This document shows positions 4,562-48,555 of a stretch of DNA of 64,000 nt, one piece after another. The position numbers were made by a program, and so were the translations under genes. The first letter of the stretch is position 1. Each line of letters begins with the position of its first letter. This DNA comes from Azolla caroliniana (Eukaryota; Plantae; Polypodiophyta), in NCBI GenBank assembly GCA_043228905.1, contig JBHGNT010000001.1, positions 33,604,001 through 33,668,000 on the forward strand. The letters are read 5' to 3'. The notes beneath the pieces are model-generated. The model was not told the origin of the DNA and did not search any database. It worked only from the letters and a program-made list of their open reading frames with translations.

Positions 4562-6215
4562 TCATGTATGCTTGCTAAGAAATTCGCAAAGCATTTCCAC
4601 CAAATGGTAGAACAAATCTGAGTTTGGAAGTAAGAAGAAGCCTATTGTGGCTTGCTCGAGGAACATAACTTGCACTGATTTCCCTGCTTGTTTAAGACCA
4701 TTGACATAGTTGAGTTGCCAGTCTTGGAGCAAATCATAACCACCTATGATTACCAGACAAGTCGGGAGTGGTATATTGTGTAAGCGGGGCGCATTTATGG
4801 AGAAAGGATTGCTAGCTGGGTGATCTCTATTTGCACCTACAGGTAAAAAAGCTCTCCAATACCAATCTCTGTCCTTCACACTGACAAAATATTTTCCATC
4901 TAATGCCATCTCTGATGGTGTTCGTTCTTGGCCTCCAAACATGGGCATTAAGAGGATCGTCCCCGAAAGATGTAAACCCCTTTCTGCTGCCTGAACAGCA
5001 ACATGATGCACTATATTTCCGCCTGAGCTGTCACCTGCTAGAAAACACTTATGAAGAGGATTGCAACCTAATTGTGATAGGCAAGCCATTCCCTCCATAC
5101 CTTGTGCCCACTCTAAGCTTGTGACACCATCTTCGTAAGCACAAGGGTATCGATTCTCGGGTGCCCGCCGGAAATTCACAGATAAGATTACAACTCTGCA
5201 CATCTTAGCGAGACGTCTACACATAGCATCGTAGATCGCACTATTAGCTGATGAATGTGCAAAGCTACCGCCATGGAAATAAATCATCAATGGCTTGGAG
5301 GATAGTTGTCTTCCTTCTTGCCATTGCGGGTGATGATGATGATCATTGATTTCATGTGCTTCTTGATCTCCATCCACGTTGTGTGGTATCCGATCTTGAT
5401 TCATTTCACGTGTTATTCGATCTTCATCCATTTCATGTGGCATGTGGTCTTCTTCAATCTCTTCTTGATCGCATTCCCAAAAGATTCGACCCCATACACC
5501 TGTCTCCGGATCTATCAACACATCCATCGATGCTATTCCGTCCACGGGGATGAGATTCGCCGGTACATGTCTATCCAGGAACTCTGCCAGCTGGCGGTTG
5601 AATGTACCATCAGGTCTCCGGAGCAAGTTGTATGAAAGCTTGAAGTTGGAGATGAGAACCCATGTGCTTAAAGGCACTACAACCTGAAAGCATGACCCAT
5701 CAATCCATCATCCAACAGAAATCAAATAACAAAATGCTCACCAAAATGAAGAAGGTTGCGACTTCAAATACATGTACGCAGCAAGAATATGGTAGAGACG
5801 AACAGGAAGTTATATGAGAAAAAAATTTGCACATTGAAACGAATCCCAAAATGTATCCGCACAAAAACGGCCCAAAAAACGGAAGAACTCAAAATTAACC
5901 TGAATGCCCTTAGTACTCACAAAGTATGTAATCATAAGCTGTATTTTCGTAATTCTTGAAAGTTTAGGGAGTATCCTGGTAAATACCCAAAAGTGTAGAT
6001 GTGTTTTGGGTGTTTTCATTGCGTATTACAAAAATACCAGTACTTAATTTTAACGAATTAGCACAAAAAGAAAACAGAAAATCATGAGGTTAAAGAACTT
6101 TCATGGTCAAAACAATACCCAGGAAATCTGTGAATCAAAAGAATTTGCACAAAAAAACCAAGAAAATCACGAAGTAAATAAGGAAGAAAAGAACCTTAGA
6201 ATCTGGTGATAGCAT
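4562..6215 (-). CDS. GID1: Gibberellin receptor GID1
   Basis: Exon 1 6215..6195 (MLSPDSK|gt), exon 2 5683..4562 (VVVPLSTWVLISNFKLSYNLLRRPDGTFNR lid; HGGSF, SAIYD, GDSSGG, KYFV..DRDWYW, ATIGF with the catalytic His replaced by Ile). Typical GID1 two-exon layout. Confidence 0.95.
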
Positions 6216-11647: not shown

Positions 11648-14600
11648 GTTTTTGTTTTTTTAAAGAAGGTTCACCTTGGTATTAATGGAAAGATGCCAAA
11701 AGCCTAGAATGAATTCATACAATATGTTACAACCGTTATATCCACATCAACTAGAATGTCAAGTATCACAAGCCCTCATGGAAGTTGTTCCAAGACGGGG
11801 GTGGAAAAAGCCATCTTGGTGGAGCATATCTCCACTTTATTCTTTCTCCAAAAGAGATGAAAACCTCCGCGTTTTTCCAAATTTCTCGAAACTGTTGTTG
11901 TCTACGAATCACAACATCAGGCTCACCAGTTATTGCATCATATTGACCTCTTAAAGTGTGTACGAGCATTAACCATACCTCTTTGACTAAGTCAACCACC
12001 TTCTGTTTAACTTTCTGAAATACACATTTACATCTAGCCTTCCACAATACCCAAACGACTAGAGAAGATATCGTAGACCAGACCATATCCTCTTCCGAAC
12101 AACGAACTGATGTAATATCTGAGATCTCCAATACATGTCTCCCATCGGAGAGGAGAAGGAACTCACCATACTCCTTTTCATAGTTTTGAATTTCCTTAGC
12201 CAATCTTCCACATCTCACAAAACCCCATGTGTACACCTGCCTACCATAAATAGGATATAACATTCTCAACATTCTTTTCCAAACTATTCTAGCAATAGGA
12301 CATATCCATAAAACATGGTAAACCAATTCAATGGGAAAACCACAACTGTCACATTTTAAATCCTGACAATGTCCCCGCATCCATGACTTCACAGGAAAGA
12401 CATAATGTATCAACAACCATTTAAATAACACGACCTTTTTAGGAATTTGCATGGCCCATAACCATTTCCAATAAGCCTTCAACCAATAATCTGTTACATT
12501 ACCAAGTCTCCAAAATTTACAAGCTATTGGTGTAACAATCACACCTCTCCTTAGCATTTCTCTACCCATTTTTACCGAATATTGAAAGAATGGGATTTGC
12601 TTACCTAACATTCCTTGCGTTGATCTGATTTGCCATTTCCACTCACCAGGATCCCACAAAAGCCAATCAATGGGCTTAGTCTCATAGACCCATAAATTAG
12701 AGAGATTGTTTACATCATTTGGATGTGGGCTCAATATCCATTTTTTATCTTTCTTCCATAATACACGAATAGGCAACCTATTCCCTCGAGTTACAATTTC
12801 GTCTTCCACAAAGAGAGAATGCAGTCATCCACAAGACAAAACATCGAAGTACAAGCATTCGTGAGAGTTTTTATAACCCCTAACCCCCAATAATACATGT
12901 AGGGATGAAAACATATCATACCAAAACATACTAGTTTGAGAAGGTTGAAAGGAAGATATTGTAAAGACTCTACCCATTTCTGAATACATAATATTCCCTC
13001 CCCAAATTGCCCTACAAACTTGGGTTTTGTTTTCCATCGCTGAAGAAGAAAAAGTCAGCCAATTCCCAACTGACTTAGCTTCACCTTTATCAAAGTCAAC
13101 CCAATTCAACCTAGTTCTCTTCCCTAACATTACCCCATCTTCTGATGTAAATAGTGGGTTCAGTATGAGGGGTTGACGCAACCATTCCTCCTTACATGAT
13201 GGTGGAGATTGGATTAAGTATTGTTTCAAGTCTCACCATGCCTTCATGATACCCCGCAAAAATTTATTTTCGCGAAAAATATCGATGGACTGGTTAAAAT
13301 CTCTTAAAAACCACCATCTAATACTATCTTTCCAATTGCCATCGATAGAAAGCACAACTTTAACCATTCTCTGCCTTAAGATTTTTTTCCAAGGCTCCCC
13401 ACCAGGCAACAAACCTCTTATAATAAATTTCCCCACTAAAGCCTTACATTGTAAAAGAGGGTCAATCAAACCAAGACCACCTTCGTCCTTTGGAGTTGTA
13501 ATAACTTTCCAAGATACCTTGGCTCTCACATTGTACTTGCGATAAAGCAGAACATGAGCACAACCAAGCCGATAAAATGTACCACATGGAGGCCAACAAT
13601 ACTTGATTGGCAATGACAACCCTTCCTGCCAATGACAATTTAGCAGTATTCCAATATAACAATTTCTTCTTTATAGCAAGGAACAAAGGAGCTACATGAT
13701 CTTCCGGCGAAATATTAATACCTACCTGGCACCCCAAGTTTCTTATAGGTTTCCCAGTGGAATCCATTGAAACCCTTCTTCTTGTGGGCACCACAAAGGG
13801 TTTACTGTGTTACCTACCCAAAACCCCATCGATTTATTCCAATTAATAATAGTTCCCAAAGCATAGCAAAATGTATCGCTAGCATGTTGTACTCTAGAAA
13901 GATTGTCGTTAGAACCTTGCAAATACAAGGCTGTATCATCAACACATTGACAATCCACAACTTGCTCCTCTAACCATGGCCATTGTAGCCCTTTTATATT
14001 CATAGTATTACTTGTAAGAAAACTACCAAACGCTTCTCCAATCATCAAATATAAAAAAGGAGCCAACGGACATCCCTGTCTCACTGACCTCGAAATTACG
14101 AATGCTTGGCCTAACTCTTCATCTACTAATACCCTACTAGTAGCTGAGTTATAAAGAGTTAAGTCAGCTGTTAACCATTGATTAGGAAAACCCAACTTTT
14201 CCATGGTACCCCTTAAAAAAGACCAATCTACTCTGTCATAGGCCTTTTCGAAATCCAAGAATAAGATGACTAAATCGTCTTTCCTTTCTTGTGAAATTGC
14301 AACCGCTTCCCAAAATAAAAAAATGTTATCCAATATACTCCTATCTTGTAAAAATCTTGTTTGGGTGTTATGAATGATGTCTGATAAAAAAGGTTGCAAA
14401 CTCATAGCCAATAACTTAGCATATATTTTGTAAATAGTATTCAATATAGTTATTGGTCGCCACTTCCTAATATCAGCCACTACCCCTTCCAGCTTAGGAA
14501 TAAGATAAATCATGCCTTCGGTCCACTTACTAGGCATAAATCCAATGTCAAATACCTCCTGAAATGCTGCAGTAATATCAGTCCCAATAAACTCCCAATA

Positions 14601-16693
14601 ATTCCGGAAAAAATCAGCTGAGAGTCCATCGGTACTAGGGCATACATGGGAGCCAATTGCATCCAAAGCAACCCTTACTTCAAAAACCGAAATCGGTTTA
14701 ACCAAAACATTTATCATATTGAGTGAAACCCGTGCATGCATGGATTGCTTCACAACTCTCTGTCTCTCCAATTGATCCAATGTAAAACATTCAGCAGTCA
14801 ATAGATTACTATAAAATTTCGTAGCAATATCCCTCATTTCTTCGACATCCTCAATAATGGATCCATCATCCCTGTGTAGTTGTTTCATTCCATCACAAGT
14901 TTTTTTTGGAGTTAGAATTTTGAAAAAATCAGCGAACACTTTATCCCCCACTTGTGCCCACTTTGCAGCAAATGCATTATAAGTGTATTGAGCCCAATTA
15001 TCTTGTAATTTACCGAGCTTATCCTTTGCATTATTTAATTCTAACATCACCCACGTAGCCCATGGCCTTTGTTGCTGAAAGTGTTGCAAAGAAGTAACCG
15101 CTTGTTTCATACTCAAGATCTTAGTTTTGAGTTGACACCTTTCCTCCTTTGCTTTAGTACCAAACCAATTACTAACTTTAACAATTGCATTTGCAACTCT
15201 ATCACACACCATCAATTGCGATACATCTGTATCCTTCCAAATTGCTAAAAATTCTCCTCTAAGGGTAACATCCACATACAAGGAAGAGGGTATAGGTGTC
15301 CTAAGTAACAATAAGAGGTGAGTGATCTGAGAAAGTTGTCCCAGCTAAAATCTGTAATGATGCTCTTAATGCTATAAAGAAGTCATCAGCATAGAATCTA
15401 TCTAATCAAGATATATTAGCACCTAATAACCGTCTATCTGATCTAGAGAATTGCAAAGATTCAACATGTTTGCTAAAAGAGGGAGAGCACCAAGTATCTT
15501 GAAAACGATACTTAAAGCACAACCTCTCCCAAAAGCTCAATTCTGAACCATATAAAACAGCTTGGCTACCCCCACTTCTATCTAACTTATCCTCAATCAT
15601 ATTAAAATCTTTGGCCATACACCAATGATCCACCTGGGGTAAAGTATCACACATATAAGACCACAACCTCCTCGTATCTGCTACTGCATTGTGAGCATAT
15701 ACATTTATAAAACCCAATTGTAGATTTTGGATTTCTAAAATAATAAACTACACTCTTCCTTCCACTAAAATCTTATAGTCAATCACATGAGAATACCATT
15801 TCTGGGCTAATGCTATACAAACACAAGCTTTATTGTGGGATTCGCCAATTGCGGGACTCCAAAAATGGGCCCATGAACCAGTAAACAAGGACCCATAAGA
15901 ATCAATCCTTGTGGAACTCAAATGATGTTCTTGTAGAAAAACTATATCTACAGACCTCATGAAGCTTTTATGTAAATTTTGTCTTAGTGTAGCCTTAAAT
16001 TTTTGCGCTTGTGCACCACCCAATCCTTGAACATTCCATGATACAATGCGAAAATTATTCATAGGCTAACAAAAGTTGTTTACCTTTCATCTTCTTCTCC
16101 TCCATTGTTGCTCTCCTAGGCTTAGTAATTTGTTCGGCAATCTTAAATCCTTTCCAAGGTTTCCTAGCCACAATTTCTGCATAGGAATCCTTCTTTAGTG
16201 AGGAAGAGAGTGTGCTCTTTCCATCCACCATGACACCTCCATTCATAACCATAGTATATGATTGCACAACCGATTTTTTAAGCATGAATCCTTGTGCATT
16301 CTTACCATGGTTTGTTAAGGCCTTTGTTTTAGCCCTAGTTAACCTTCAAGAGTAGTGCGGACCGTTCATAAAACCCTCCTCCAATGATATCACAAATGTG
16401 ATCCCTTCAGTCTTTTCTACCTGGGTCATCACTAACTCCATATTGGCCTCACCTTGTAATGAGGAGGGTTCGAAAGTTATCATCTATTCGTGATCATTCC
16501 CTCCCTTCAAGGGCTTCTCCTTCATAGAACTTACAATATCATTGTCAATTACAATATCATAATTCTCCTCTCTACCACTTTGTACATCATTATTAATAAA
16601 AGGGATTATTTGTAAATCTGATTGATTAACTTGTGGACTATCATGACTTGCATTTGGTGTCTTTTTAGAAGTTACCCCGACATCATACTATGT
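11648..16693 (-). mobile_element. L1-type LINE (family B): ORF1 3' part plus frameshifted ORF2 (endonuclease-RT-zf)
   Basis: SWNVQGLG / FLQEHHL / INVYA / DFNM endonuclease motifs; WRPITILN, LDFEKAYDRVDW, VRQGCPLAP RT motifs; CDSC..HVLWIC zinc finger; T-rich tail at 11648-11661; 18-bp TSD CCTATGTAAGTGCATTTT at 11630-11647 and 16694-16711. Confidence 0.93.
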
Positions 16694-18577: not shown

Positions 18578-21500
18578 ATGGCCGCCATCAACTCACAAGA
18601 ATATCTCATCCTTGTTGCAGAAATGGAGAATCTTAAATCCAAGTTCACATCTCGTGATTTAGAGAATCAACGTCTACTTGGAGATCTACAAAAGGTTACT
18701 ATGGAAAAGCAACAACAACAAAATGAGTTTATGTGACGGGTTCAACAAAATGAGTCGACAATCATAGTTTTACAACAACAAAGGGTCGAAGGTCAAGGAA
18801 TTATCAAGGAGCCCAAAATCAGTCTCCCAGGTAAATTTAATGGTTCGAGGGCGCATTTCCGGGGTTTCTTGAATCAAGTACGCTTGGTAATTCAAATGCA
18901 TCCCATGGGTTATCCGACAGATGCATCACAAATCGGGTTAGTGGACACCTTATTGACTAGTATACCGTTATCGTGGTTTGCTCCATTAATAGAGACAAAT
19001 TTTCCTCTACTATAAGAATTATCTTTACGTTCTATAGGTCAACTTGATATGCTCTTCTTTCAAGAACACCATCTTAATTCACGAAGGATAGCATCGAATA
19101 GAAATTTACTACGTGGTAATTGGATTTATGAATGGGTTCCGGCTTTTGGACTCTTTGGTACTCAAGGTGGCCTTTGTATTGCACTTAGAATGCAATGGCA
19201 GTCTCATGTACAAGCTAAAGGAGTCTTGTTTGGTGGTAGAGTTCAGTATATGCTTATTCTTATCTTTGGAAAATTTATTGGTTTTTTGAATGTATATGCT
19301 CCGAATTCTGCTCCTGGAAGAATTCGATTGTGGAATAAGTTATTGCAAGATCGTCTTGTGGCACATCATTGGTTTATGTGTGGTGATTGGAACATGATCG
19401 AAAGCCCTATTGATAGATTAGGCGAATCTTTTGCTACTATCTCGGGTTTGGAATTGCGTGAGTAGGAGAAATTAATTTTCAAATATGAAGTTACTAATTT
19501 GTGGCATATTCCTACCTTCTCTCGCATGCCCGATTCCTTGTTATACTCACGTTCCAATCGAAGAAGTGCCGCTCTCAATTTGTCGAGAATAGATAGTTTT
19601 TATGTAGATTCTTTCTTTTGGGATCATGGAGGATATGTGGGTATTATATCGGGCACTTCGATCTTAGATCATAGCCCGATTATGCTCAAATTTTGTATGG
19701 ACAACCATACTTCTATTTCTCGATTTTATTTGCCAAGGTTTATTGTTGACGATATGAATTTGCAGAATATAGCTTTGTCACTTTGGAGAATGGCTATAGG
19801 GGATTCTAATTGTCAAAAATTACAGAATGCTCTTATCGCAGTTTCCAACTTCTTTATACAACAAGTTAAGCTAAAACAAAGTAGTTACACTAGAAATTTG
19901 CTGAATGCTAAAAGAGGTTTGGCTTCTCTTCAAATTTCGCAGGAAAAATAACCTCATTCTCAATATATTCATTGTGAAGTACAGAATGCTATGATGCTTA
20001 TTTCTTCTTTGCAGCAAAAACGTGCTCAATTCTTTCTTCAAGCATCTGTAGCAAGATGGTGTGCAAAAGGTGACACCATGTCAAAAAAATAAATCCAACA
20101 TGTTATGCCTAAAAGAAATAAAATTCAGATTGTACAATTGAAAAGCTTTGATGGCACAGTTACAATGGATAGAGATGAAATGAGGAATATTGTAGCTACT
20201 TATTATGAGTCGTTGTTATCAAAGATACTCCAAGTGTTGAAACTCTATAGATGCGCCAAAAAGTATGGGCTACTATTGCGGTTAAGGTAACATCTCGTAT
20301 ATCTCTTCAGCTTCTTCGTCCATTTTCCTCCTTTGAAATTTTACAAGCTATTAAAGGCGTTGGGCCAGATGTGTCCCCGGGAGTAGATGGAATGGGAAGA
20401 GATTTTTTCATTACATATTGGGATTTGATTGCCGATGATCTACTAGTAGCATTTCAAGAAATGTTCAATACAGGTATTATGCCACAAAAGTGGAAAGAGG
20501 GATTAATATGTCTCATTCTGAAAGGTGATGTTGTTACGGATGAGGTGAAGGGTTGGCGGCCCATTACTTTATTGAATACAATTTACAAAATCTATGCTAA
20601 GTTATTGGCTTTGAGATTACAACCCTTTCTTCCAGATATTGTGCATGATTCATAGACGGGATTTATGCAAGAACGTAGTATTTTTTACAATGTTTTTCTG
20701 TTTTGGGAATTAACATGGATGGGAATGAAAAATAAAGAAGATCTTGCGGTACTTCTATTAGATTTTGAGAAGGCATATGACAGATTTTATTGGGACTTCA
20801 TGGAAGGTTCGTTTTTTAGATTAGGTTTTCTTGCTCAATGGATTAGGGTTGTAGCTTCCTTGTATAGTGAGGCCTTTAGTTCAGTCTTGGTCGTCGGTGC
20901 GCAAACTAGAAAATTTTCTATTTCGTGTTCTGTACATCAAGGTTGTCCATTGGCCCCATTCCCGTTTTTGCTAGTAATGGAAACATTCTCAATGTATTTA
21001 AACTCCTCTCAAGTTTCTCTGAAGGGTTTGCCTTTGCCTGCCATGCAACAACAAATGTTGGATGCAGAATTTGTAGATGATACTGCAATTTATGTTCAAG
21101 GTAATGATGAAAATTTAAGTAAATTGCAAGAAGTAGTGCAGGAATTCTGTTTGGCCTCTAGAGCAAAGATAAATTGGCATAAATCTCTTGGCTTTTGGGT
21201 ATCACAAAATTCCTTGCCTACTTGGATGCCTTCGCAGGAATTCAAGTGGGTTCCTAATGGAACCACTACTCGTTACTTAGGTTGTCAAGTGGGACTTCAT
21301 GTTACTGTAGATATGTTAGTTGCTCCTCTACTTGTGAAATTAAAGAGAAATTTGTTGCTTTGGGATTCGGTTAACCTGTCACTTGCAGGTCGTGTACTTG
21401 TAGCTAGCCAACTTCTTTTAGCTACTATTTGGTATATTGCTTCAACTACATTGTTTGCTAGATCATGTATTTCACATGTGCAACGCCTCATTCGTAATTA

Positions 21501-23929
21501 CATTTGGGGAGGAAAAATAGGTCAAGGTAAAAGGCCTAAAGTAGCTTGGGCAGTATTGATTGCTCCGCGACAAAATGGTGGGTTGGGGCTAGTGGATCCA
21601 GAAGCACATTGTAAGGCTTTGCTTTCTAAATTTGTGTGTAGAGCTATGTTGCCAATGCAAGGTGTTTGGAGTCGGTTGATGATGCATAGGTTGTCTACTA
21701 TGTGCCCGACAATAGGAGGAAAGTGGCTATCATCATTAAGATGGGGCTTTATTCAGAATTTTCATTTGTTTAAAACAACCTTATCAGAAGATAGGTTTTT
21801 TAATGGAATTCCCACAAGTTGGTCAGCTATTAAAAAGTTTCTAGTTCGAAAGGTGCCTTCGACAACGAATGACTTGTTGAGACAGCCCTGACCTGAAACT
21901 TTCTCTTTTCAAATTCAAGGGGTTTTCTGCTTGGTAGCCGTCCTCGGTTGAATTGGGCTTCTATGGATGCATCAATAGCAAGTAATGTTCTATCATGGGG
22001 ATGTTATGTTATGAATCAACCATTACAATCTTTGTCAAGGCTTTCAGTTCGAAAGTGCTATTATGTGCAACGATATGCAAGTGGCATTGGGACAATTTAT
22101 GGCTTCATGGTCCCCCTCTGGCAATCAGATTTGGTTTGGTTATTTCTCTCCTTTAAAAGTTATTTTAGGAGCTAAAGTAATTAACGCTACGGGGGATGTA
22201 ATATTCTTTAATGTGGATGATGATGGTAGGTTGGGGCATGTATTTTCTAAATAAGATGTGTGGATGTTTGCCAATGTTTCAGTGATTCGAGTAATTGCAA
22301 GATCTGGAAAAAAATGGTTCTTGGATCCACCCTTTCAAGAATGCTTACAGTGTTGTTCATTGTGGGTTTTTCAACAAAAGCCGCTTTATAATTTAGATTG
22401 GGATCCAGCTTATTATCAATGGAAAAATTCGAATGCTAGTGGAAATGGTAAACACTCAGAGTTTTTCCAGTATTCAGTTACGCTAGGTAGAAATTTATTG
22501 TTGCAATCAAAGTATAAATGCCCTGGTGCCATGAAGCATTGCAAATAATGTGAATGCATTGCAACTTACAAAATTTTGGAAATGGTTGTGGAGTATGCAG
22601 TTGCCAAAAAAAGTGATTTGTTTTCATTGGTTGTTAATGCATTATGCTCTAAGACTTCTTGTTGGTGATTGGTTGAGGCAAAATCAGCAATATGATTGTG
22701 GAATGCATTGTGGTGCATCTACAGAATCTATTTTGCATTTGTTTTGGTTATGTCCCAAAATCAAGCAATTCTAGAGTAAATTGTTTTTATTATTGAGACA
22801 CCATTATGCTCGTTCTATCTTCTCGTGGGGTGCAGTATTATGGGGTGTCCTTCATGGAGATGTTATGAAGTAGGAAAGTATGCATGCTTCTCACGTTTTT
22901 CACTTTTCCAATGGGTACATTTATATCACTTCATTTCCATCTTTTATTCCACAGTTTAGAACTGGGATTTTGTTTATTTAGCGTACTATTATGTCATTAG
23001 CTCTTTGGACAATATGGAAAATGAGATGCGAGGCTGTTTTTAATAATGCTCACATACATCTCAGTACTATGCTTATTGAATTCTGGTTGTTATTTGTCCA
23101 TACCATACCTGGACAATATGATGATCTGCAGGGTTCAACTGATGCTCAAAGGCAACGTCAAGTGGATTTTAAGAAACGGTGGCGAGGGTTTCACTTATTT
23201 TCAGATACGACTTCTAGTATGAAGGGGAATTATGCCATACCTTCTTTTTTATTGCATAGCTTGTAGATTGTGCTCCATTTGTTCCTTATATGATATCATC
23301 TGTTTGATCAGATGTTGGTATTAGCTTTTGTATTACAATAGAGGTGAGATGAAATGTCTCCTTCTGTTTTCTATATGTACATTTCTCAAGTAATATACTA
23401 AGGTGTATCTTTCTTTAAAAATAAAAAAAATCTTCTACTAAATAATTTCGAGGAATTTATCAAAGAATTTAAGGCTGGCTTCAGAGATACAGATGGGGCA
23501 AGAACAACAATCGACAAGATTCGTACACTATGTCAAGGTAATAAGTTAGCATCGACATATAAAGCCAATTTCCATCTCATCGCAAGCGATATTCCTTGGG
23601 ATGAACAAGCCCTAATGTAGCAATTTCGTTCCAGCTTTCGTAGTGATGTGAAAGACTTACTTCTTACCTTCCTTGGTGATCCAAAATCACTTAAAGAAGC
23701 TGTTAGTTGAGCAATATGGTGTGATAATCACCTTTTTGAGCATCGATGTGAGCGACAACAACAAATAACAAGATTAAGATTCACACCAACTTATGCATCT
23801 GTAACAGCGCAATCATCTCCAAGGCAAACATATAGCCCTGCTCCAAGTCCAAGGCAAACACGTAGTCTATTCCCAATTGATAGTCCTACACCCATGGAGA
23901 TCGATATGACCCAACGACGAGGACCGTTA
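18578..23929 (+). pseudogene. Retrotransposon gag (Sushi/PEG10/Tcn1-like) split by a LINE, with in-frame stops
   Basis: MAAINSQEYL...KEPKISLPGKFNGSRAHFRGFLNQVRLVIQMHP..YPTD..LSWFAPLIE | LLNNFEEFIKEFKAGF..KIRTLCQG...F..IASDIPWDEQAL..FRS.FRSDVKDLL...PTPMEID...RGPL; ends before the zinc knuckle. Confidence 0.85.
19013..23430 (+). mobile_element. L1-type LINE (family A): nearly complete, decayed ORF2 inserted in the gag
   Basis: FFQEHHL, LNVYAPN, GDWNM, SRID, DHSP (endonuclease); WRPITLLN, LDFEKAYD, HQGCPLAP, EFVDD (RT); zf-RVT; A-rich tail 23417-23430; probable TSD TC(C/T)TCTACTA at 19003-19012 and 23431-23440. Confidence 0.92.
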
Positions 23930-26269: not shown

Positions 26270-26405
26270 GCAAATTTGACATTTTAGTATTTTGCCACTT
26301 CATCTTTAATGCCTCTATTAATCTTCCTCAATTATCAGCAAATTTGACATTTTAGTATTTTGCCACTTCATCTTTAATGCCTCTATTAATCTTCCTCAAT
26401 TATCA
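26270..26405. repeat. Perfect 68-bp tandem duplication
   Basis: gcaaatttgacattttag...cttcctcaattatca twice (26270-26337 and 26338-26405). Confidence 0.95.
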
Positions 26406-27344
26406 CGTACCTCATAGCATCACCTAGACAGCAACCTATTATGTAGAAGCAGTTAGTAGTACTCAAGTCTAGGAGAAGTGTACTTACTATGTATCCAAAA
26501 GTTCAAAAGCTCAACATTGCAAGGTTGATTATCAAATTCTATACAAAGTGGGGATGGGAACCCACAATTTTTAAAGCTGCCTATGAACCTTTTTTTTTTA
26601 CCACATATATCATACAACTACCATGTTCTCTTTTTTTAATGTATTTTTATAACAAATAGCAGTGCAGATGTAAATGTATTACCAGTGTCCATATGCGTAT
26701 TGTGTATTCAGAAGTTTCAAAGCTTATCATTGCAAGGTTGACTATCAAATGATATTATACTTGTGAATAGGGATGGGAACCCACTATTTTTCATACTGCT
26801 TATGAAATTTCACATTCTCCTTTTTCTACATTTTTATATAGCACCGCATTTAAAAGAATAACATCTAAAAGAATTCCACCCATCCCTTAAATTTGGTTAT
26901 TCAAAATACTCGAACCTGTGCTCATCGTTTGTCCCCTTGATTTAGTTGGAGTCTGCAGAACCAAACCAATTCGTTAATCTCTCAACTTAATTCTCATTAT
27001 CAAGTAAAGTCATATAAATAGTTACATACATTTAGACACATACACTAGAGGGCACACTATAATACACCACTCAAGGGCATTATTGTAAGTTAAACATCAT
27101 CCAATCCTCCAGCACCAAGTCATCTATGTGTTGGTACATTTGCAAGTAAGGACCCACAAGGTAACCAGAATCTATGTATATTTTCCTGTACTTGTGCATG
27201 TGCCCTTGCCCTGATGTATCAATACATTATATATATAACACGTGTGTGTATATATTACCTTTAACAGCCTAATGGTTCACATGTATTAAGATTGTTCCTA
27301 CAAATACATAGTTTTACTTGAAACAGTTCATGTATATGAATGTA

Positions 27345-30300
27345 CTAAGAAAACTCTATCATACCACTACAATTTCTTGTTACCATTAACAAACATGCAT
27401 TTTGTTGTATTTCATGATACTCCAGCTCTAGTCCTTGAACTTCATCTTCAAGTTGCTTTATAGTGTGTTGGTATTGTAAAACTTCTTTACTGACTTCATC
27501 CAACTGGTTCTGCATATTCCACGATGTACCCACACACTTTTTTTCTCTTGGAAACAAAAAAACAAAATTGTCAGTATCAGAGACTAGTTGAAAATGCATC
27601 AATTAAATGCAAAACTTCCATGATTAATTATTGCATGATTCCTAGCAAGATGAAATGCAGGTTTTCGCTTGAGCTTAAACTTGAGATATTGAAAATATAT
27701 TCACTTGGTTCTCACAAATAGACATCAAGCCTCAAGTAAAATTGCTTCATAACTTGCACTTATCTCTCGATTCAGAATTCACCAGAGTAGTGGACTAAAC
27801 ATGAATGTGGTTAAAACAAAAATGATGATACTGTGAACCATCCAACCACATCGATACCCTATTCTAACATATAAGGGAGAATAATAACAATTTGTGGAAA
27901 GCTTTGAACCTAGGCTTCAAGCTGGTTGGAAAATTTATTATATGTTGGAGAATCAACGCAACTAAAGTAATATTGATGGATGGGAAGTGAAAAACTATTG
28001 TTATTTAAAATCCCATGGTAATAATTCAAGTCTTGCTTTACGGAGTAGAAGTGTGGGGAGGTACTATCAATCTTAATGCATTGAAAGAGATTGAGAAGAT
28101 GCCATGGATGTTTTAAGGAGACAATTGGGAGTTAAATCCACCACCTCCTACCAAGTTATGCTCTCGGTAATAAGAGTTCAACCCATATAGACATTGGCAC
28201 TACACTGTGTATACAGATACATTCCAAAAGTCAAGAATACACCAAATCATAGATTACCACATCTTGCTTGGAATGTTGGATGTAAACTACAAAGGAATCA
28301 CAAGAGAAATTTTACGCTAATCTAGTTGGGTATTTGACGTCAAAATATGGTTCAAAAAGATGGGGTGTGGAAGATCTCTTAGAGATTTCAAGGGATATTA
28401 TGCAATATGTCGTTATTGATGAATGGTTAATGGAAACACTAAGGAACAAGTGGGTAGGTGCAAAAAGGGCAAAATTAAAATATGACATTGAGGTCAGCTT
28501 TCTAGGTGTTCTCTTTAGCATGACACTCATGTCATTATCCCTCAATATGTCATCATTGCTTTCATTAATTGCACTATATGATGAGCATGTAAAAAGATAG
28601 TGATATTCATCCTCTACTAGCCCTTGCTCGCATATTTTTCATGCCTTTATATTTGACACCTTTGATGCCATAATGCAACTTCAATACCTTGCTTGTGTAA
28701 TTGAATGCAAAGGAGTGTAAGGGCTCTACAAGAGTTAATACTCATTTTAGTAATGAGATAAGGTTGAATACAATCAATAGGCATGCTTTCCTTATATTGA
28801 GCCCAACATTTAGCGTTTTGCCTTATTCACACATTGAGACTTTGTGCTTTGAAGATGATCAAGAAACCCTGTGTACTCAGGTTCCATGGGTCAATATTGA
28901 CCTTGTTAGATATAATCAATGATCTATCCCCATATGTACTCTTAGAGTGCACATTTTGTGATAGCACCCCAAATGAGGAGTAGCTATTGTGCAACTTGAC
29001 CATGGGTCAATAAGGTGTCAATCTAGGAAACCGTAGATGTGTAGGACACAATGTATTTAAGAAAGAGTGAAGTAGGTTAATAGGATTGGCTAATCAAGTC
29101 AACTAGAAGAATATTTTGTGGGCAAGTTACGATGTACTTAGTCTTGAAGTATGTGTCATTGACTTAAGATAAGTACTATCTAGCACTAGCTTGTATCTAC
29201 GGAGCTGGGTCATATTAAATGACAAGTCAATTGACAAAAGAGGAATCTCTCCACTACTATCAACCGACATGCACATTTAATGTTACACTCAGACCAAACA
29301 GATAATATAATCCACTCTCTTACACAGTGGTGTGATGATTATCAGTCCCCACTAATTTTGTAGTGAGCTGGTCCAGATCCCATCTAAGCTCTAGGGTGTG
29401 AGCACATGGGTGAACTACCATTGTGAGCTACTCTCACATGTAATAGAAGTTTGTTTTTATATATCCATCTCTGTGATTGTAACTCTATATACTACTTGAT
29501 TCTCAATATTCCTAACAGGCCTCTCTATGGATGCTAAAACATATATATCTATCACCATGCGGTTATTAAGGGATAAACACCAAAAGTATCTTTCACCTGT
29601 TTATGTATTTACGAGAATACTTTTAAGGGCTTTTAAACAGTACCAAAATATCATCTATGGTAGCAATTCTTTTGTTTGCTACTACACAAGGGCTATTCTG
29701 GCAAAAGTTTAAAAACCAATGGGAAATCTAGGATACCCAAAAAAGATTAGGGTACCTTGAGTATTTTTCCCTTTAAATTTTACAGGATCTCCATACTTTG
29801 CTTTAAGTGATAAATGCGTAAAAAACTAAAGAACAGTTGCAGAAGATAGGTCATCTTGCTACCTTTCATGCTGACTGGATGTTCGTCGAAGAATCAAACG
29901 ACATCTCTCCAAATATTCATCAGGATCAACCAAGGAGTGATAAATAACCACACCATTTCTTGCCCAAAAATAGTAAAAAACAGTGCTTGCTACGGCTGCC
30001 GATAGAAAGCATCGACCCACTTCCCCGAAATAGGCTTCAGTCTGAAATGTCACCATTGCCTGCAGAGCTAGAAACAATAACAGTGTACCACCTCTTCGAA
30101 TCAACCTGACATGATTGCCAACAAGCTTTTATTTTTTATGAAAAATTTCCCAACAAACCATTATAATTAAAAAATCGTAGGAACTATGTTGCTAATCTGG
30201 AATCTTGATTAGATTTGTAACAAAAGGAATGGCAATTCAGTATTTTTATTTAAATTCCAAATTGTGGATAGCTTGTTTTGGTATTTTTTCCAACATTATG

Positions 30301-31605
30301 GTGGGATATATTGATAACTTTATCCCTTTTAGGTTTTCAATTTAATATCCTTTATATACAGATTATGGAAGAGAGTATTCCATTAAAACAACCTGAACTC
30401 ATCGTACTGAGCAAATTGTTCCTTCATTGCATTTCTGAGCTTAAATGCAAAGCCGAGAAAAATGAGGAAATAAACGACCAGTAGAGTCATTAACCCATAT
30501 GCTGATATAGCTCGATTAACAAACTTGCAATGCCCTATATGCTTCTCACCCCTTGATATGTCAATTTCATAACTGATACATTTTCCAAATTCAAAGAATA
30601 CATCAGTCGTGTTTGCATTCATGGATTCACATTATATAATTCCATTTCTAGCCTTAAACCAAAGAATGAATTCAAACCATGTAAGTTCCATATGAGAGGA
30701 CAGTAATGGAGCCAATAGCTATGGTCTCCATTAACTCCTATATGCTTACCCTAAGATACCTTACTCTTATTATGCTTCTTCCACGAGTCTATAAATATAC
30801 ATACACAAGCATATATACACACACATAAGACACCAATCAAATGAGAGAGAGAGAGAGAGAGAGAAGAATATTGTATTTTTTAAATGACCTCTTTCTCTTT
30901 CTTGAATCTCTAAACTCCAAAATCTATTTTTTAACTTAGTGATATGCTTTTCACAGATATGTATAAAACACTATCAAAAGAGAGAGGGGGAGATTGGCCT
31001 TGTTATCCGAACTTAAACCTGTGTATGAATGAATTGATGAGTGTACGTACTTATGTATGATTGAGTTTTATATGCACATATGCATGTACATATGTCCCTA
31101 TGTGTTTATGTGCAAACACAGACAAACAAAATCAAAATCAGAAGAGTTCTTACCTGATCTCTTTCCTGACTGATCCCACAATGCAGAAGGCGACTGCGGG
31201 AAGAAGAAATGGAAACAAGAGAGCATATCCATGCTTATGGACGCTCCTCTTGCACACAAAGATTCTGTAGAGACGGATGAGGTGAAGAGTGAGGCAATTA
31301 AGCCACAGAGCAAAGCCAAAACAGGCATCAAGCCAATAGGTCCATAAAGAGCAGAGACTTAAAATAGAGTTTTCTCTTCTCTTGAAGTGCTCGTTCACAA
31401 TTAGGGTTGAAAGGATGAAGATGAGGCCACCTGCTGAGCTTAGGAGTGTGATGGGCACGCTCTTGGTTTTGATTGGGGGGAATCTCCTATTGAAGAAGAT
31501 GGTTATGTTGCCTAGTAGCATCAGGAAGGAGCCTATGGCGATGAGGCTTACTGTTGTGTAATCCAAGATTGAAGTCGGGGACGGGGATGGGGATGGAAGA
31601 GCCAT
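27345..31605 (-). CDS. RGS1-like seven-transmembrane protein (~358 aa) with no RGS box and a C-terminal coiled coil
   Basis: Exons 31605..31154, 30572..30393, 30105..29863, 27546..27345. All three introns are GT-AG and phase 2; the joined frame is open (1077 nt). Seven hydrophobic segments. DYTTVSL, CSLWTYWLDACFGFALWLNC...LYRIFVCKR and YDEFRLIRRG resemble the RGS1 7TM domain. Confidence 0.8.
27785..28400 (+). mobile_element. Decayed RTE-like LINE remnant inside intron 3 of the 7TM gene (antisense to it)
   Basis: SGLNMNVVKTKMM...QVLLYGVEVWGG..EIEKM..LRRQLGVKSTTSYQVML...VKNTPNHRLPHLAW...KRWGVEDLL across frameshifts. Confidence 0.7.
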
Positions 31606-31744
31606 TGATCATGAGAAGGTAATAGCCCACCATCTATTGGGTGGAGAAACAGAGACATACAGAGACAGAGATAGAGACAGGACACAGAGACTCTGTGTGT
31701 GGGTGTATGTGAATGTCATTTAGTCTTGGGCTTTGACCACAGTA

Positions 31745-31770
31745 TGTACATATGTATATATGTATGTATG

Positions 31771-31809
<39 letters not shown>

Positions 31810-32157
31810 ATGTATGTATGTATGTATGTATGTATATATGTATGTATGTATGTATGTAATGTATGTATGTATGGTATGGTATGGTATGGTATGTATGTAT
31901 GTATGTATGTATGGTATGGTATGGTATGGTATGGTATGTATGTATATATGTATGTATGGTATGGTATGGTATGGTATGGTATGTATGTATATATGTATGT
32001 ATGGTATGGTATGGTATGGTATGGTATGGTATGGTATGGTATGTATGTATGTATGTATGTATGTATGTATGTATGTATGTATGTATGTATGTATGTATGT
32101 ATGTATGTATGTATGTATGTATGTATGTATGTATGTATGTATGTATGTATGTATGTA

Positions 32158-32210
<53 letters not shown>
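31745..32210. repeat. Compound (TATG)n/(TATGG)n/(TG)n microsatellite
   Basis: Direct reading; explains the six low-complexity ORFs at 31634-32374. Confidence 0.97.
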
Positions 32211-33644: not shown

Positions 33645-36600
33645 TTAAGAGGAGGATGAATGCCTTCTCCAACCCACTTTTTGACACACCAGAAGTTGTT
33701 GATCACCAATAGCATCAACCTCGATAACACGTGTTTCCCATCTCATCTGGTTCGCCAAGATTCTCATATCCTCTATAAGCTCCGATTTGTCTCTCAAGAT
33801 CACCCATCCCTACACATCATTGAGTTATCGAATAAACTTTTGAACCTCGATGCAACGAAAACACATTGCTTTTTAAGGTTTTGATGCATCAAAATGCATG
33901 CCATGGATATATTTAAGGGATATTTATGAGAATATCTCTCCTGTTAGGGATATTTACAAGAATACCCCCTAACGAAACATAATCATCCTTGTAACGTTTC
34001 AAAACATAGGGGTATTCTGGTAAATTCCCATGAAGCTAGGGGTATTTTGGTTCTTTGCTCTTTATATTACATGATTTGTTCATTTTACATGTCGTACTAA
34101 CCTCCGGCCGCAAAATCCTATCTATCTCGAGGAAGAGGTTGGAAATCCCACAATTGCCAATCTCTTGAGAAAGAAGCCCAATTCCATGCAATAGATCATA
34201 TGTCCTCGGATACGTCGGAAAAGCCTCACACCTGAATAAAGGCCAGCATTGTAGATTTTTTATGTTTTGAGCAACCATGTATGCCATACAACGCAAAGCA
34301 AGCATTGAAGTTTCTAATCTATTGGCATGTAAAGAATGGCCGTGTTATATTGAAGGAAAAAAATAGAATGAGCATCCTAGTAGCTAATTTGATGAGTCTG
34401 CAATCATACTTATCCGGCAACTTTATATTTTATTAGTCGTATATAGAATGACTGCACTAGCTATAAACATGTCCTTGCTACGTGCTTCTATATGTCTTGT
34501 GTAGTGAGAGATGGGCCAAGACGTTGTCGACAATGCATATATACAAATATGATTGGTATGCGCCCATCCAATTACTAGGGCATCACCTTATCTAACAAAA
34601 GCCCCAAAATCACCTTGTGTTTCTCTTTATTTCCCAAATGCCCCCAGTAGTTCTCGTGATTTCCAAGTACCTCGGTCAACTCCAAGATAATGATTATACG
34701 ATCAAATAAATAAAAAATCCGGCGGCATTTGGGAAAATAAAGCAAAAACTGACACATGCTGTACTCATAGTATTCCACAACACACACTTATATACTCGTA
34801 GCAAAACTCTTCTCAAGCAAGCACCAACCAATTATGTCGTACTCCAAGTAATCCACGGTCGTATATAGTCGATAGTGTATCAGGTGCACTCTGGGGAACC
34901 ACATTCATTACCCAAACGGGCTTCTTTGCTTCAAGTAACGCGGCATTTAAGTTACCATGCAAGGCATTCATGTCCATCACATTGCGTATGCTATGGACAG
35001 GTTCGGATGTGTCATCTTCACCATGACGCTTGGGATGGTCGGAAAATATCAATGGTGTTAGTAGAGACCAGTAGCTCTCTACCGTCGTACACCATACATG
35101 AAGATCATCCAAGAGCTCGTTAGCTGAAAATCCTGTTCATAGTAAAAGCAGCATAGACTCAACAAGTCGGTTTAGCGAGAAAAACCTGACCCTTTTAAGC
35201 CCCAATCTCCCTAATGTTTCGCAACAAACATGGCAATGTTACACATTGTTGTTTGATCGAACCCGTAGAAGCTTTTTTGTGTGAACACTATATTCACATG
35301 TGCAGTCTACCTCTAAATATTTTTGTCCCACCAAAACATGCCAAATTAGCTGTAGACGTTGAATCTAGTATGCATCACAAAGCAGAATTAAGTGACAAAA
35401 AACCATTAACATACCAAAATGATATGCATCATCTGTTCGTGCTCGGTTTCCCTTGTGTACATTGATAGACTTTGATATACAAGGTCGAAGCGGTGGATAT
35501 AGTGTCAACATAGACGAATTTACATCTGCCCATCGACCACATAACTTCGGCTTTGCTTTTCCTGTCCTGCTAGGAAAGAAAAAGAACATTGAAAATGTTT
35601 TTCCAGAAATGTCATTAAGTCAAATATCATGCTTACATCATAAATCTCAAATATCATACAAAATTATGCAATTTCTTCAATTCAAATCAAGCATCTGAAT
35701 TCAAAATACTACATCAAATTTCAAGATTACAAATCAATGTTATATAATAATGCCACATATCATAGTCAATGACCATAAAGACGAGAGCATGAAAATATCT
35801 TTGCACACCATACCCTACCTCAAAGAATAGCAACTATGATTAGATGCCTTCCTCCAAATCATATGGGCATCATTCTCTAATAATGGAGACCAGCATATAT
35901 TACGTGCAAAATCTTTGTTCACAAGTGAAGATGGTTTGAGAGATTTTATGACATAGGGAAGTGATGAAAACACTTCCGATGTCCACATGAACACACCATC
36001 ATATTTGAGTAGTCTATCCAACTCCAAGAGTAGAAGCCCCTCTGTATAGACAAACATAACCAACAGACATTTAGATGCTAATGTACAATACAATCTATGA
36101 AAGCATCGCTTTTTACATATTCGTACAACATCACATACAACACATTAGACATTCCCCTCATTGTTCTGATCTAACAATTTATTTTTCCTTATAGATATGC
36201 ATGATCTATGACTCAAGGTAAAGAAAAAAAAGAAGGAACCTCTTGTAATTACTAAATACAAGTAGTTGTGCAAATTTATACAGTTCCCCAAACCTTGAAA
36301 GTGCCCAAAATAGAGGTAAAGTTTTACAATTTCCCAGTATTTAAGCTTGTTTTTGGCAAATATAGCTTTTGCATTACCTTAATTTACCATTAATTGGGTG
36401 AACGTTTCAAAAACTCTTCCTCATAAAATATAGCCACAAGTTTTGAAAATCCTTAGAAAACTAGCTAAGGAAGCCTCAGATGTTTTCTCTGATGGCCTTA
36501 CATTGTTGATGTGCATATACTCAGATATGTGAAATAATGATGCAGTGATGAAGATTTTACGGTTGCGAGTTTGAATCTCGGGCACGATGGGTTTTAAGTT

Positions 36601-38362
36601 CTATTCCTCATATAACAATAATCTTAGCAATTTCTACTTTGAGATAAATGCACACAAACAGTGAAAGGGTTGAGATTCTATGTGTTAGTTGGGATAAGTT
36701 TAAGTTCTACCTTTCCAAGACCAGTCAAAGTTGCAATCGAAACAATGGATCATATCGAACGAGAAGCTTGGGAATGGCAATTGAGAGGAATTAAAAGAGC
36801 CGATAATTGCTGGGAAACCCCTTTCAAGATGAAAATGAACTTGGCTCCCATATTCTTCATATGGAGAAATGCACAAGATTGACGCCTTCTCTAGATGTCG
36901 AGAAAGGGCTCCAGGCATCATCATCCGATGTAGTCCACAGTTTATATCCAAGATTGTTCTCAGCTGAGATTATCGCAAAGACCACATCATCAACAAGAAC
37001 CACAATGTTTGTATATATATTTATAAGGATTGTAACATTTTTGGTTGAATGCATAATCCATAAGGATATCACCTTTTGACTCATTACCAAAAGGTTTGTT
37101 AAGGCCAAAACAAAGATTTAGCATACATGATACAAACTGAGCTACAAACAACAGTTAAGGTAAGATCAAAATGAATGTGAATTCCTTCTACCTTAGTTTG
37201 AGTACCAACAAGATTGTGGATGATTTCCTGGACATTCTGATCATTAAGGCCAGACTTGATGGTATTCAAGCTAACAATTCCATTCTCTTGAAGCGTCAAC
37301 CTTCAGCCAAAATACAACGATATGAGATGCTATGATCTTTCAAAAAAAAAGAAAAAAGATTTAAAAAGACTCTATAGCGTTAAGAAAACTAATGATGATA
37401 ATCCTCTGGTTTAACCAAAAAGAAACGTAAAAACAGAACTCTCCACATGCTGAAAAAATATAAGAAAAATCTCAGTTTTTGCAAAATCATGACCCCAATT
37501 TTCCAACAACAAAACACAGAGCAAGGCTGAATAGAATGCCTCTTCACATAATGAAATGTAAGAGCCAGAGTCTGTTTCTTCTTCTCTTTTTCTTTTACCT
37601 TGTAATAGTCTTGCTTCCAGAAAGGCTCAATCCATCAATAAACTTCATATTCCCATGCCAAACACCGTCTCTAGATGCTGGCCATCTCAATGGAACCTTA
37701 TATTCGTCAGGTGTTGGGAAAACACATTGCACTCTCTCTCTTCTCTCTTCGTGTCCACAGTCTCTTCTTATATCATTGAAATTTCTTCTTGGCTTGTCGC
37801 CATCGTTGTTATGATAAGTGTTGCTGTGATTATAACAAGGAACATCATCCCATTCCATGTCTTTGCACACTTGAATCTCTTTTACTCTAATGCCACGAGC
37901 ATGAGAATCGAGTAAATGTAGTGTTTTGAGAGGATGAAGCATGAGTCCAGCTTTGGCTTCATCTTGAAGTCGTCGATGTGATCGGTACATTGCAATGTTG
38001 GGCACTAACCTCAAACGAGAATACTCTGTTCTTCTCGTCGCATTCCATGTGTTGATGAGCACAAAAATGGTGAGAAAGCTGAGGATCATACTGGTTCCCA
38101 TGGAGAATATGTTGGCATGTGGACTCTTCTTTGTCCTATGGTCATGAAGAGGTAGCTTGGATTTGATGGGGGAAGGGGAATCAAACTTTGCAGTGTTGTT
38201 GTTGATGTTGCTGTTGTTGAAGTTAGTAACATGTACAGGGGAATTTGTTACATTCATGTCAATATTTTTTGTGTTTGTATGGAGCTTTTCATGGATGGGT
38301 GATTGTGAATTAGTGATGGAGTGTAAATCTCTGGAGGCTGCCACCGGAGATGTGCGATTCAT
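33645..38362 (-). CDS. Type II membrane SAM-dependent methyltransferase (Methyltransf_29/DUF248), QUA2/TSD2/OSU1 clade
   Basis: Exons 38362..37599, 37300..37192, 36963..36711, 36041..35819, 35569(or 35566)..35415, 35132..34829, 34231..34102, 33809..33645; phases consistent. Motifs: YKVPLRWPASRD..W..N, GSQV.FHLERGFPA, QLPFPSFSFDMIHC, YWSLLTPLIFSDHPKR (QUA2-clade signature), RNVMDMNA, WVMNVVP, WCEAFPTYPRTYDL, EIDRILRPEGW. Confidence 0.9.
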
Positions 38363-38850
38363 GGCGAAACAATGTAAACAAAACTGAGAAATGGAGGTGA
38401 TTGATTCGAGCACAAATTGAGGGGGGGGGGGGGGGAAGAGCGATACAAGTGAATGAGTGAGTGGAGAGAAGATCTAATGATGTGAAGTAAGTGTTGGTAT
38501 ACGAGAAAAGAGTGTGGATGTGAAAGGAGGAAGGGCAGAACAGAGAAATTATAGGTATTAGGAATATATATACATATATGCACAAACAGCTTCAATGCAT
38601 ATAAGTAAGGAAAGGGGCTAAAGATAATGGTTAATGTAAAGGAGAGGGGGGATTATTGAATCAGGAAGCTCAGAGTGTTCTCTCGCTCGCTCTCTTTCAG
38701 CCTCAGTGAATGAATGAATGAATGAATGAAAATTTGCTGGCAAATATGTATATGTATATGCATATATGATGATGTCTGTCTAGTACTCCTGTGAAGGAAG
38801 GACTGAAAGAGTGAATAAAGAGTGAGTGACTGGATCGTAGTATACATACA

Positions 38851-47046: not shown

Positions 47047-47533
47047 ATGAATATTCAGGCCTTCTTGAAAGTTCAAAAGAAGGGTTTTCTTATTACAGGA
47101 GGAGTAAATAAGAGGGAGTATATTAGGAGTCTGAAGAGTGGGTGTGGTCCCGGTCTTGTCCGGATGGCGACGGCAGGGTCTGGAGTGGCAGCAATGAGGG
47201 AGCAGATGTTGGCAGGGAAGGTAATCCCGGATGTGGTAGGATCCATGTCTCCTGACATGCTCGACATGAGGGTCAAATACAAAGAGATGGAGGTGGCGAA
47301 TGGTCTGGCGGTCCGGAGGGCACAAGCACGGATGAGGCCGCATGTGGAGCTCCATGGACCCTCTGCTGGGACTGATTTGGACCGATATGCCCTTATCATG
47401 GTCGACCCTGATGCCCCCTCCCCTTCCTCTCGCCCCTCGTTCCGTGGCTGCTTCCTCCACTGGCTCATCATCGATATCCCGGGGAGCATCCCTCCCTCCC
47501 AAGGTTACTCTCTCTTGCATACACACACACACA

Positions 47534-47574
<41 letters not shown>

Positions 47575-48555
47575 AATGGGTAAATACCCCATTTTTTTGT
47601 TGTAAACCAATTGTCTCATGGGTCAATTTTGGCTCTCTCGATGAATGGGTAAATACCCCATTTTTTTGTTGTAAACCAATTGTCACATGGGTCAATTTTG
47701 GCCTTAGAAGACGTTAATATATCTTTCTCTCTCTCTCTCTCTCCTTCTTGTCCCTAATTTCTTCTTTTCCTGTTTCTCTTACTGCTATGGTGAAGAGAGG
47801 TATTTCTTTTAATTATTTGGTAGCATAAGCTATGTATGGTTAGCACTAAAACTGAAAGTTCCAATAACATGGTAGTCATTGTCTCATTTTTTTCTTTTCT
47901 TTTTTGCGAGCTAATGATTCAGCTTGTTCTTTTTGGGCTCATTACTCACAGCGTTCTGTAAAGAACCTTGGCAACTTGTTTCTTTTCCCCTGTTTTTCTT
48001 TAATTTCAGTTGGCTTTTATCCTGACGCTTCCTTAATTTAGCTATATTTTGGTTTTTGCCTTTGACCCCTCAGGGAATGAATAGTTTCTTTTGTGCTCTT
48101 TTTACTTCTTGTCTGCTCCTTACTTAATATGGATTTTTATCAGAGATTTGGCAAGCTGGACGTGAAGTTGTGGCGTACATGGGACCTTCTCCCCCTGAAG
48201 GCCAGCATAGATATGTGTTTCTCCTCTTCAAGCATCAGGTTTTGTTTTTTGCTGCTAATGATATCTTCATTTTCGTGTTTAGAAGTGGATTGATTTGATT
48301 TTTACTCTTTTTTAACAATTAGAATGGGCAGAAGATATATTTGTATTCTATCTTTAGAACTGAATTGATATGGTTCTTCCTTTCCATAACTAGGGGAGTC
48401 CGCCATTCCAAGTCCATGGTGCTAGTAGTGACAATAGGAAGAATTTTCATGTGGAGAATTTCGCAAGATCTAATCACCTTGGAGATGCCGTTGGTGGTTG
48501 CTATTATACAGCATCGCCTCATGATGAACTTCAATACTCTGGTCAACAAGTTTAG
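47047..48555 (+). CDS. Divergent PEBP-family (FT/TFL1/MFT-like) protein; start at 47047 or 47163
   Basis: Exons 47047/47163..47503, 48144..48238, 48394..48555. Motifs: KVIPDVV, EVANG, YALIMVDPDAPSPS, HWLIIDIPG, GREVVAYMGPSPPEGQHRYVFLLFKHQ, RKNF..ENFA...LGDAVGGCYY. Confidence 0.9.
47564..47701. repeat. ~69-bp tandem duplication in PEBP intron 1
   Basis: ctctctcgatgaatgggtaaatacccc...catgggtcaattttgg twice; a related copy lies at ~46378-46455. Confidence 0.9.

Follow-up and report, generated by a model that had tools for sequence, protein, structure and literature searches.

Does a seven-transmembrane (7TM) protein that resembles the membrane half of RGS1, and that ends in a heptad-patterned tail in place of the regulator of G-protein signaling (RGS) box, derive from RGS1, or does it belong to a family of its own? 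This question is raised by a gene on the minus strand of a 64,000-nucleotide stretch of Azolla caroliniana DNA (contig JBHGNT010000001.1, positions 33,604,001 to 33,668,000), here called the window, whose positions are used for all coordinates. The original prediction, made from the sequence alone, had proposed an intact RGS1 paralog without a GTPase-activating protein (GAP) domain. We can say with high confidence that the gene belongs to clade A of a family of class C-type 7TM proteins with a coiled coil, a family of old standing among streptophytes. Our favored reading overall, to which we give a probability of roughly 0.5, is that it encodes an orphan class C-type receptor that would dimerize via the coiled coil and act on G proteins without GAP activity. 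The existence of real plant G protein-coupled receptors (GPCRs) is a long-standing question, mostly studied in angiosperms.

Transcripts and protein of the Azolla gene

The original prediction joined four exons by three phase-2 GT-AG introns into an open frame of 358 amino acids (aa), with a stop at 27345. We mapped four public runs: X1, X2 (bearing a second organism label), X3 (a third), and X6 (probable DNA). All three exon joints were present in contigs of X1, X2, and X3 and were not found in X6. A 1,230-nucleotide (nt) contig of X1 crossed all three joints with 0 mismatches over 1,133 nt, and X3 had the same three joints with 43 differences in 1,113 nt. The proportion of words from the 4.6-kb stretch found in one public run (0.23) corresponds to the exon fraction. 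The RNA nature of the runs is a program's guess; the joints are intronless at GT-AG ends, and the contigs are therefore transcripts.

The predicted stop, on the other hand, is not reached by the transcripts. Transcripts leave exon 4 at 27384 in X1, X2, and X3 or at 27365 in X2 and X3, the alternative donor adding 19 nt (27365 to 27383), and contig depth was zero over bins 27146 to 27336 in X1 and X2. The contigs continue into two exons that the prediction had overlooked: exon 5 (37 nt, 26916 to 26952) and an exon 6 starting at 26435, whose coding part (26386 to 26435) contains the stop codon preceded by a Cys-Cys pair. In its main form the protein has 374 aa (the stop ends at 26386), and the alternative donor yields a 355-aa form with its stop in exon 5; both retain the coiled coil. 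Over the last joint, X3 has the same frame and the same Cys-Cys pair. A phase-0 intron shortly past the coil also occurs in Marchantia and Adiantum, in agreement with the corrected 374-aa gene model. The transcribed leader (31606 to 31700) reaches at least 31700 and contains three out-of-frame ATGs (31658, 31633, and 31612), which open reading frames of 36, 48, and 41 codons that overlap the main start and could possibly dampen translation.

The coding part of exon 1 (31605 to 31154) runs from Met1 to transmembrane helix 4 (TM4) and comprises a short N terminus, the intracellular loop 1 (ICL1) motif, Cys85, His108 (class C position 3.50), and Arg111 (3.53). Exon 2 (30572 to 30393) encodes extracellular loop 2 (ECL2) with Cys166, TM5, and ICL3 with Glu209 (6.35); exon 3 (30105 to 29863) encodes TM6, TM7, and helix 8; and exon 4 (27546 to 27384, with the main donor just past 27384) encodes a linker and the coiled coil. 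Local hydropathy of the joined exons gave about seven peaks, those of TM3, TM6, and TM7 being weak, which together with seven helices in a model of the Adiantum orthologue bears out the helix count first proposed. The cysteine pair noted at the outset is likewise present, Cys85 at the top of TM3 and Cys166 in ECL2, and neither column varies among 40 relatives. The N terminus ahead of TM1 is about 15 residues long, with an in-frame stop directly upstream, so that there is no Venus flytrap domain. For the tail, too, the early description was right: a register scan found hydrophobic residues at 12 of 13 a/d positions in one register, compared to 8 to 54% in six others, and placed five heptads (residues 307 to 341; 27399 to 27503, minus strand) that are acidic (net −7).

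A recent truncated or decaying RGS1 copy with a chance helical tail would be the simplest alternative. This copy deviates at 4 of 43 otherwise invariant sites, three of them nonconservatively, toward the upper end of the range of 0 to 7 in other members; we take this as a mild sign of divergence in the Azolla copy, and the three upstream ATGs may limit translation. The gene is nonetheless spliced in three runs, and its exon 4 is 43 to 47% identical to four other fern tails (E values of 1e-10 to 3e-7 when 15 proteins were compared). Relative to Adiantum, the proportion of synonymous differences is 0.74 to 0.92, a saturation that precludes exact selection ratios, and that of nonsynonymous differences is 0.25 to 0.34, in all four exons including exon 4. 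This pattern indicates that the coiled-coil tail is constrained by purifying selection. With the tree test and the differing intron set described below, the decaying-copy explanation is refuted, and we consider it extremely improbable.

Cys is the last residue of the fern clade A proteins P0003, P0116, and P0117, and the Cys-Cys pair of the window protein lies near its end; these tails could possibly be lipid modified. A G-gamma-like tail was considered for the combination of coil and Cys pair and was dropped for want of Pfam support.

Family range and relation to RGS1

Comparison of exon 1 with 1.84 billion representatives gave 111 matches, the best of which are proteins of 350 to 400 aa without RGS. 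Named members of clade A occur in Klebsormidium nitens (GAQ82585), Marchantia (Mp1g05640), Riccia, Selaginella, Diphasiastrum, Psilotum, Pteridium, Adiantum nelumboides, Ceratopteris (KP509_19G053100), and Cryptomeria (SUGI_1162060). A sister clade, B, is collinear with A across 330 columns including the coil and has members in Marchantia (Mp6g08470), Riccia, Selaginella, Diphasiastrum, Psilotum, Adiantum, Ceratopteris (KP509_04G006600), Ginkgo, and Cryptomeria. Both clades are thus found together in Marchantia, Riccia, Selaginella, Diphasiastrum, Psilotum, Adiantum, Ceratopteris, and Cryptomeria, and only clade A was found in Klebsormidium. Clade B-like exon fragments on unassigned eukaryotic contigs bear on the question of mosses.

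The window exon 1 falls within a fern clade of A with 100/100 support, adjoining Ceratopteris, in a tree that follows plant phylogeny. Its identity is 45 to 64% with family members (56 to 64% with leptosporangiate ferns and 50% with Marchantia) and 40% with Klebsormidium A. Introns 1 and 2 of the window gene are matched in position and phase by those of Klebsormidium, Marchantia, and Adiantum, and intron 3 by that of Marchantia and Adiantum. Helix 8 is followed by four to five heptads in all members examined. The idea of an intact, GAP-less, receptor-like plant class survives as an expressed gene of a distinct 7TM-coiled-coil family.

No RGS exon was found in the whole 64 kb with an RGS profile (best E = 1.5), which extends the earlier statement that none lies nearby; as positive controls, the profile detected the RGS exons in the tomato and Klebsormidium loci (E = 4e-12 and 2e-23). 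Exon 1 is 37% identical to an Ancoracysta 7TM-RGS protein and 23 to 31% identical to plant RGS1. In unrooted trees built without animal class C rows, fragments, and near-duplicates, with the window represented by exon 1 alone, clades A and B form one clade (98/95 to 100/99) and plant RGS1 forms another (100/100). Nesting of the family inside land-plant RGS1 was rejected by the approximately unbiased (AU) test (p-AU = 1.1e-4). A placement as sister to all plant RGS1 is absent from the best tree and was not rejected (p = 0.20). The RGS1 genes of tomato and Klebsormidium have seven common intron positions in the 7TM part, and zero introns are common to RGS1 and the clade A genes of Klebsormidium, Marchantia, and Adiantum or the window gene. 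Because the clades are distinct, the introns differ, and Klebsormidium and Psilotum encode both genes, RGS1 and the 7TM-coiled-coil gene have been separate since before the split of Klebsormidium and land plants. Of the proposed relation to RGS1, the homologous membrane domain stands, and the paralog with a replaced RGS box is not supported in view of introns, identity, and the AU test. As the sister placement was not rejected, a distant ancestor of the family may still have lost an RGS box.

Plant RGS1 shares with the family a homologous class C-like 7TM domain and the same two cysteines; unlike the family, it has an RGS box at the place of the coiled coil and is retained in angiosperms. AtRGS1 has been noted as class C-like (PMC11580166); what distinguishes the two families is therefore the tail, the introns, and the tree, and not the fold by itself. 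The homology of the 7TM domains and the presence of both genes in Klebsormidium and Psilotum would also suit a protein dedicated to RGS1 as its partner or decoy, an option raised in the original prediction; it would heterodimerize with RGS1 through the 7TM domain and tune its GAP activity. As a general role of the family, this fails in Marchantia, which is without RGS (PMC3386157) yet retains A and B. Angiosperms, conversely, keep RGS1 with no named family member found, a crude scan found no matching coiled coil in RGS1, and the introns are not common; we regard a partner role as quite improbable.

Protist relatives (Ancoracysta, Palpitomonas, and a Muranothrix record), both 7TM-RGS and 7TM-only, resemble the family more closely than plant RGS1 does when scored against exon 1 (Ancoracysta, E = 7e-22; Klebsormidium RGS, E = 3e-12). 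They differ in carrying an RGS domain or a low-complexity tail where the coiled coil is conserved, and their branching order is unsettled in the trees. A eukaryotic 7TM-RGS-leucine-rich repeat fusion of 747 aa (P0013) is among the closest nonplant matches.

Angiosperms were matched only as RGS1 (E = 2e-4), and no named angiosperm member was found. Because some unnamed matches are unplaced and the word-based searches scored at most 8,000 candidates, we only infer that the family was lost in angiosperms. We also weighed a role confined to flagellated sperm and abandoned it, as both clades are retained in Cryptomeria, a conifer. Two isoforms, P0002 (Pteridium, TM1 to TM4 plus coil) and P0006 (Cryptomeria X4, TM1 to TM5 plus coil), skip membrane exons and keep the coil; they may possibly be dominant-negative forms.

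Class C-type fold and a possible receptor mechanism

For the fold, we used the Adiantum orthologue, which is 58 to 61% identical in exons 1 and 3. In its model (predicted local distance difference test [pLDDT], 77), seven helices and a hairpin in ECL2 are followed by helix 8 and a helix of 47 residues. The model aligned best with GABA-B (Z = 23.4; root mean square deviation [rmsd], 3.5; 266 residues aligned) and GPR156 (Z = 23.3; rmsd, 3.2; 255 aligned), followed by mGlu, GPR158, and CaSR (Z = 19 to 20.5), compared to at most 17.3 for other classes (A/B). The top 11 structure rows were all class C (Z = 19 to 23). Foldseek ranked GPR156 first, as did an ESM Atlas feature search (0.92). The clade B model had a pLDDT of 60, and the long helix is present in the models of both clades.

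Profile comparisons gave the same assignment. A 40-sequence 7TM profile that included the protist and RGS1 relatives matched GABA-B2, mGlu4, and GABA-B1 (E = 4.5e-5 to 4e-4), with the ICL1 motif, both cysteines, the basic residues at 3.50 and 3.53, and the acidic residue at 6.35 (TM3, ECL2, and ICL3) in register. The family consensus has Arg and Glu at 3.50 and 6.35; K3.50-D/E6.35 is the class C ionic lock (PMC11621567). A profile of clade A matched generic coiled coils only until the distant 7TM relatives were added, and exon 1 alone found no sequence match in the PDB. Against PF00003, exon 1 alone scored 26 bits (cutoff, 33.5), the orthologues P0117 (36.8) and P0003 (53.6) were above the cutoff, and 7 of 14 members had E values of ≤0.01. 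By these models and profiles, the family is a class C-type (GABA-B/GPR156-like) 7TM family with a near-absent extracellular domain.

GPR156 is also predicted to have a C-terminal coiled coil. Like the family, it is a class C 7TM protein without a large extracellular region (PMC11621567). It differs in sequence (13 to 18% identity) and is constitutively active on Gi; at 6.35 it has no acidic residue, whereas the coiled-coil family mostly keeps Glu there. GABA-B (GB1/GB2) has the same layout of a class C 7TM domain followed by a cytoplasmic coiled coil, in two paralogous subunits. Unlike the plant protein, it has a Venus flytrap domain, so GABA binding in that way would be impossible for the plant protein.

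Together, the two co-occurring paralogues of GABA-B layout suggest a GABA-B-like dimer logic. GABA-B assembles via its C-terminal coiled coil, which governs surface delivery (PMC12499500), and by analogy the plant coil probably joins two subunits for assembly and trafficking. The product would be a homodimer in Klebsormidium and, in our tentative proposal, an A/B heterodimer in land plants. As there is no flytrap, a ligand would have to sit in the helix bundle, where a small molecule or lipid might bind; GPR156 holds a phospholipid at this site (PMC11621567). On the cytoplasmic side, the lock between TM3 and TM6 (basic 3.50, Glu 6.35) would control access to a surface that could bind G-alpha, XLG, or G-beta-gamma and would supply no GAP activity. 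This link to G proteins is plausible, if somewhat short of an even prospect, because the cytoplasmic motifs are conserved and relatives are fused to RGS domains. Since plant G-alpha self-activates without a guanine nucleotide exchange factor (GEF) (PMC3386157), docking or restraint is the likelier role. The liverwort G-alpha, with fast GTP hydrolysis and no RGS, has been proposed to have regulators yet to be identified (Urano et al., PMC3386157), which leaves room for genuine exchange activity.

Several observations weigh against this mechanism. The fold evidence comes from the Adiantum orthologue and not from the Azolla protein itself, and the latter shows the deviations at otherwise invariant sites described above. 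It has His at 3.50, as do the Ceratopteris and Adiantum members. Co-occurrence of A and B in related plants is no independent evidence of binding. The coil is mostly acidic in A and often basic in B, with Lys at an a position; this charge contrast is weak, and the B members of Ginkgo and Cryptomeria do not show it. The coil itself may be convergent with that of GABA-B, and plant G-alpha, being self-activating, needs no GEF.

The same family and fold could instead serve as a sensor or scaffold at the membrane that works independently of G proteins, with the coiled coil as the docking site for a trafficking factor or a soluble effector. Such a role would fit a protein without an RGS box in plants whose G-alpha needs no GEF, the retention of G proteins in angiosperms where no named member was found, and a coil that matches generic coiled coils only. 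Against it stand the conservation of the G-protein face, with its lock residues and its motifs in ICL1 and ICL3, and the RGS domains fused to close protist relatives, and we think it rather unlikely. The favored reading, a dimeric orphan class C-type receptor acting on G proteins, makes the family a candidate for the missing plant G-protein receptor that can be tested. The tractable models Marchantia and Ceratopteris each have two of these class C-type 7TM genes, whose conservation predates land plants, and as Marchantia is without RGS yet has both genes, a direct knockout and G-alpha assay is feasible.

A stronger version holds that nonflowering plants keep a true class C GPCR, a flytrap-less A/B heterodimer joined by coiled coils that would activate or sequester G-alpha/XLG in a ligand-dependent manner, and that angiosperms lost it. 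We consider this version unlikely. If true, it would supply the missing regulator of the RGS-less, fast-hydrolyzing liverwort G-alpha, and the angiosperm loss would account for the failure of studies in Arabidopsis and rice to turn up a plant GPCR.

In databases, members are labeled hypothetical protein, "GPCR family 3 profile" protein, or RGS1. RefSeq lists the Cryptomeria member as RGS1 despite its having no RGS box, a label that can distort surveys of RGS presence and is corrected here. Searches by topic and by member gene identifiers, with most subscription papers outside their coverage, found no paper naming the family or its genes; the family is apparently unnamed, and an earlier description is possible.

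Other features of the window

A perfect 68-bp tandem duplication (26270 to 26405) spans the stop codon and the start of the 3′ untranslated region; it is present in run X1 and apparently single copy in the related organism of X3. A 467-bp GTAT/CA-type microsatellite (31742 to 32208) lies about 140 bp upstream of the start codon. Within intron 3, positions 27700 to 29630 are a high-copy repeat (summed contig depth of up to ∼2,900 in the DNA-like run). A decayed element resembling a long interspersed nuclear element (LINE) lies at 19049 to 23266 (plus strand), with endonuclease-like open reading frames and a reverse transcriptase at 20665 to 21888 (RVT_1, E = 2.8e-15), and a second LINE-like copy lies at about 11766 to 16062 (minus strand).

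The neighboring genes are APC8/CDC23 (561 to 1817, plus strand), a GID1-like alpha/beta hydrolase (4562 to 5677, minus strand), a PMT-type methyltransferase (34813 to 38413, minus strand), a PEBP (FT/MFT-like) gene (47047 to 47583, plus strand), and a sperm-flagellar CH_2-domain gene (52188 to 52846, minus strand). A cytochrome P450 reductase-like fragment (57294 to 57605, minus strand), with no Pfam match, was recognized by eye.

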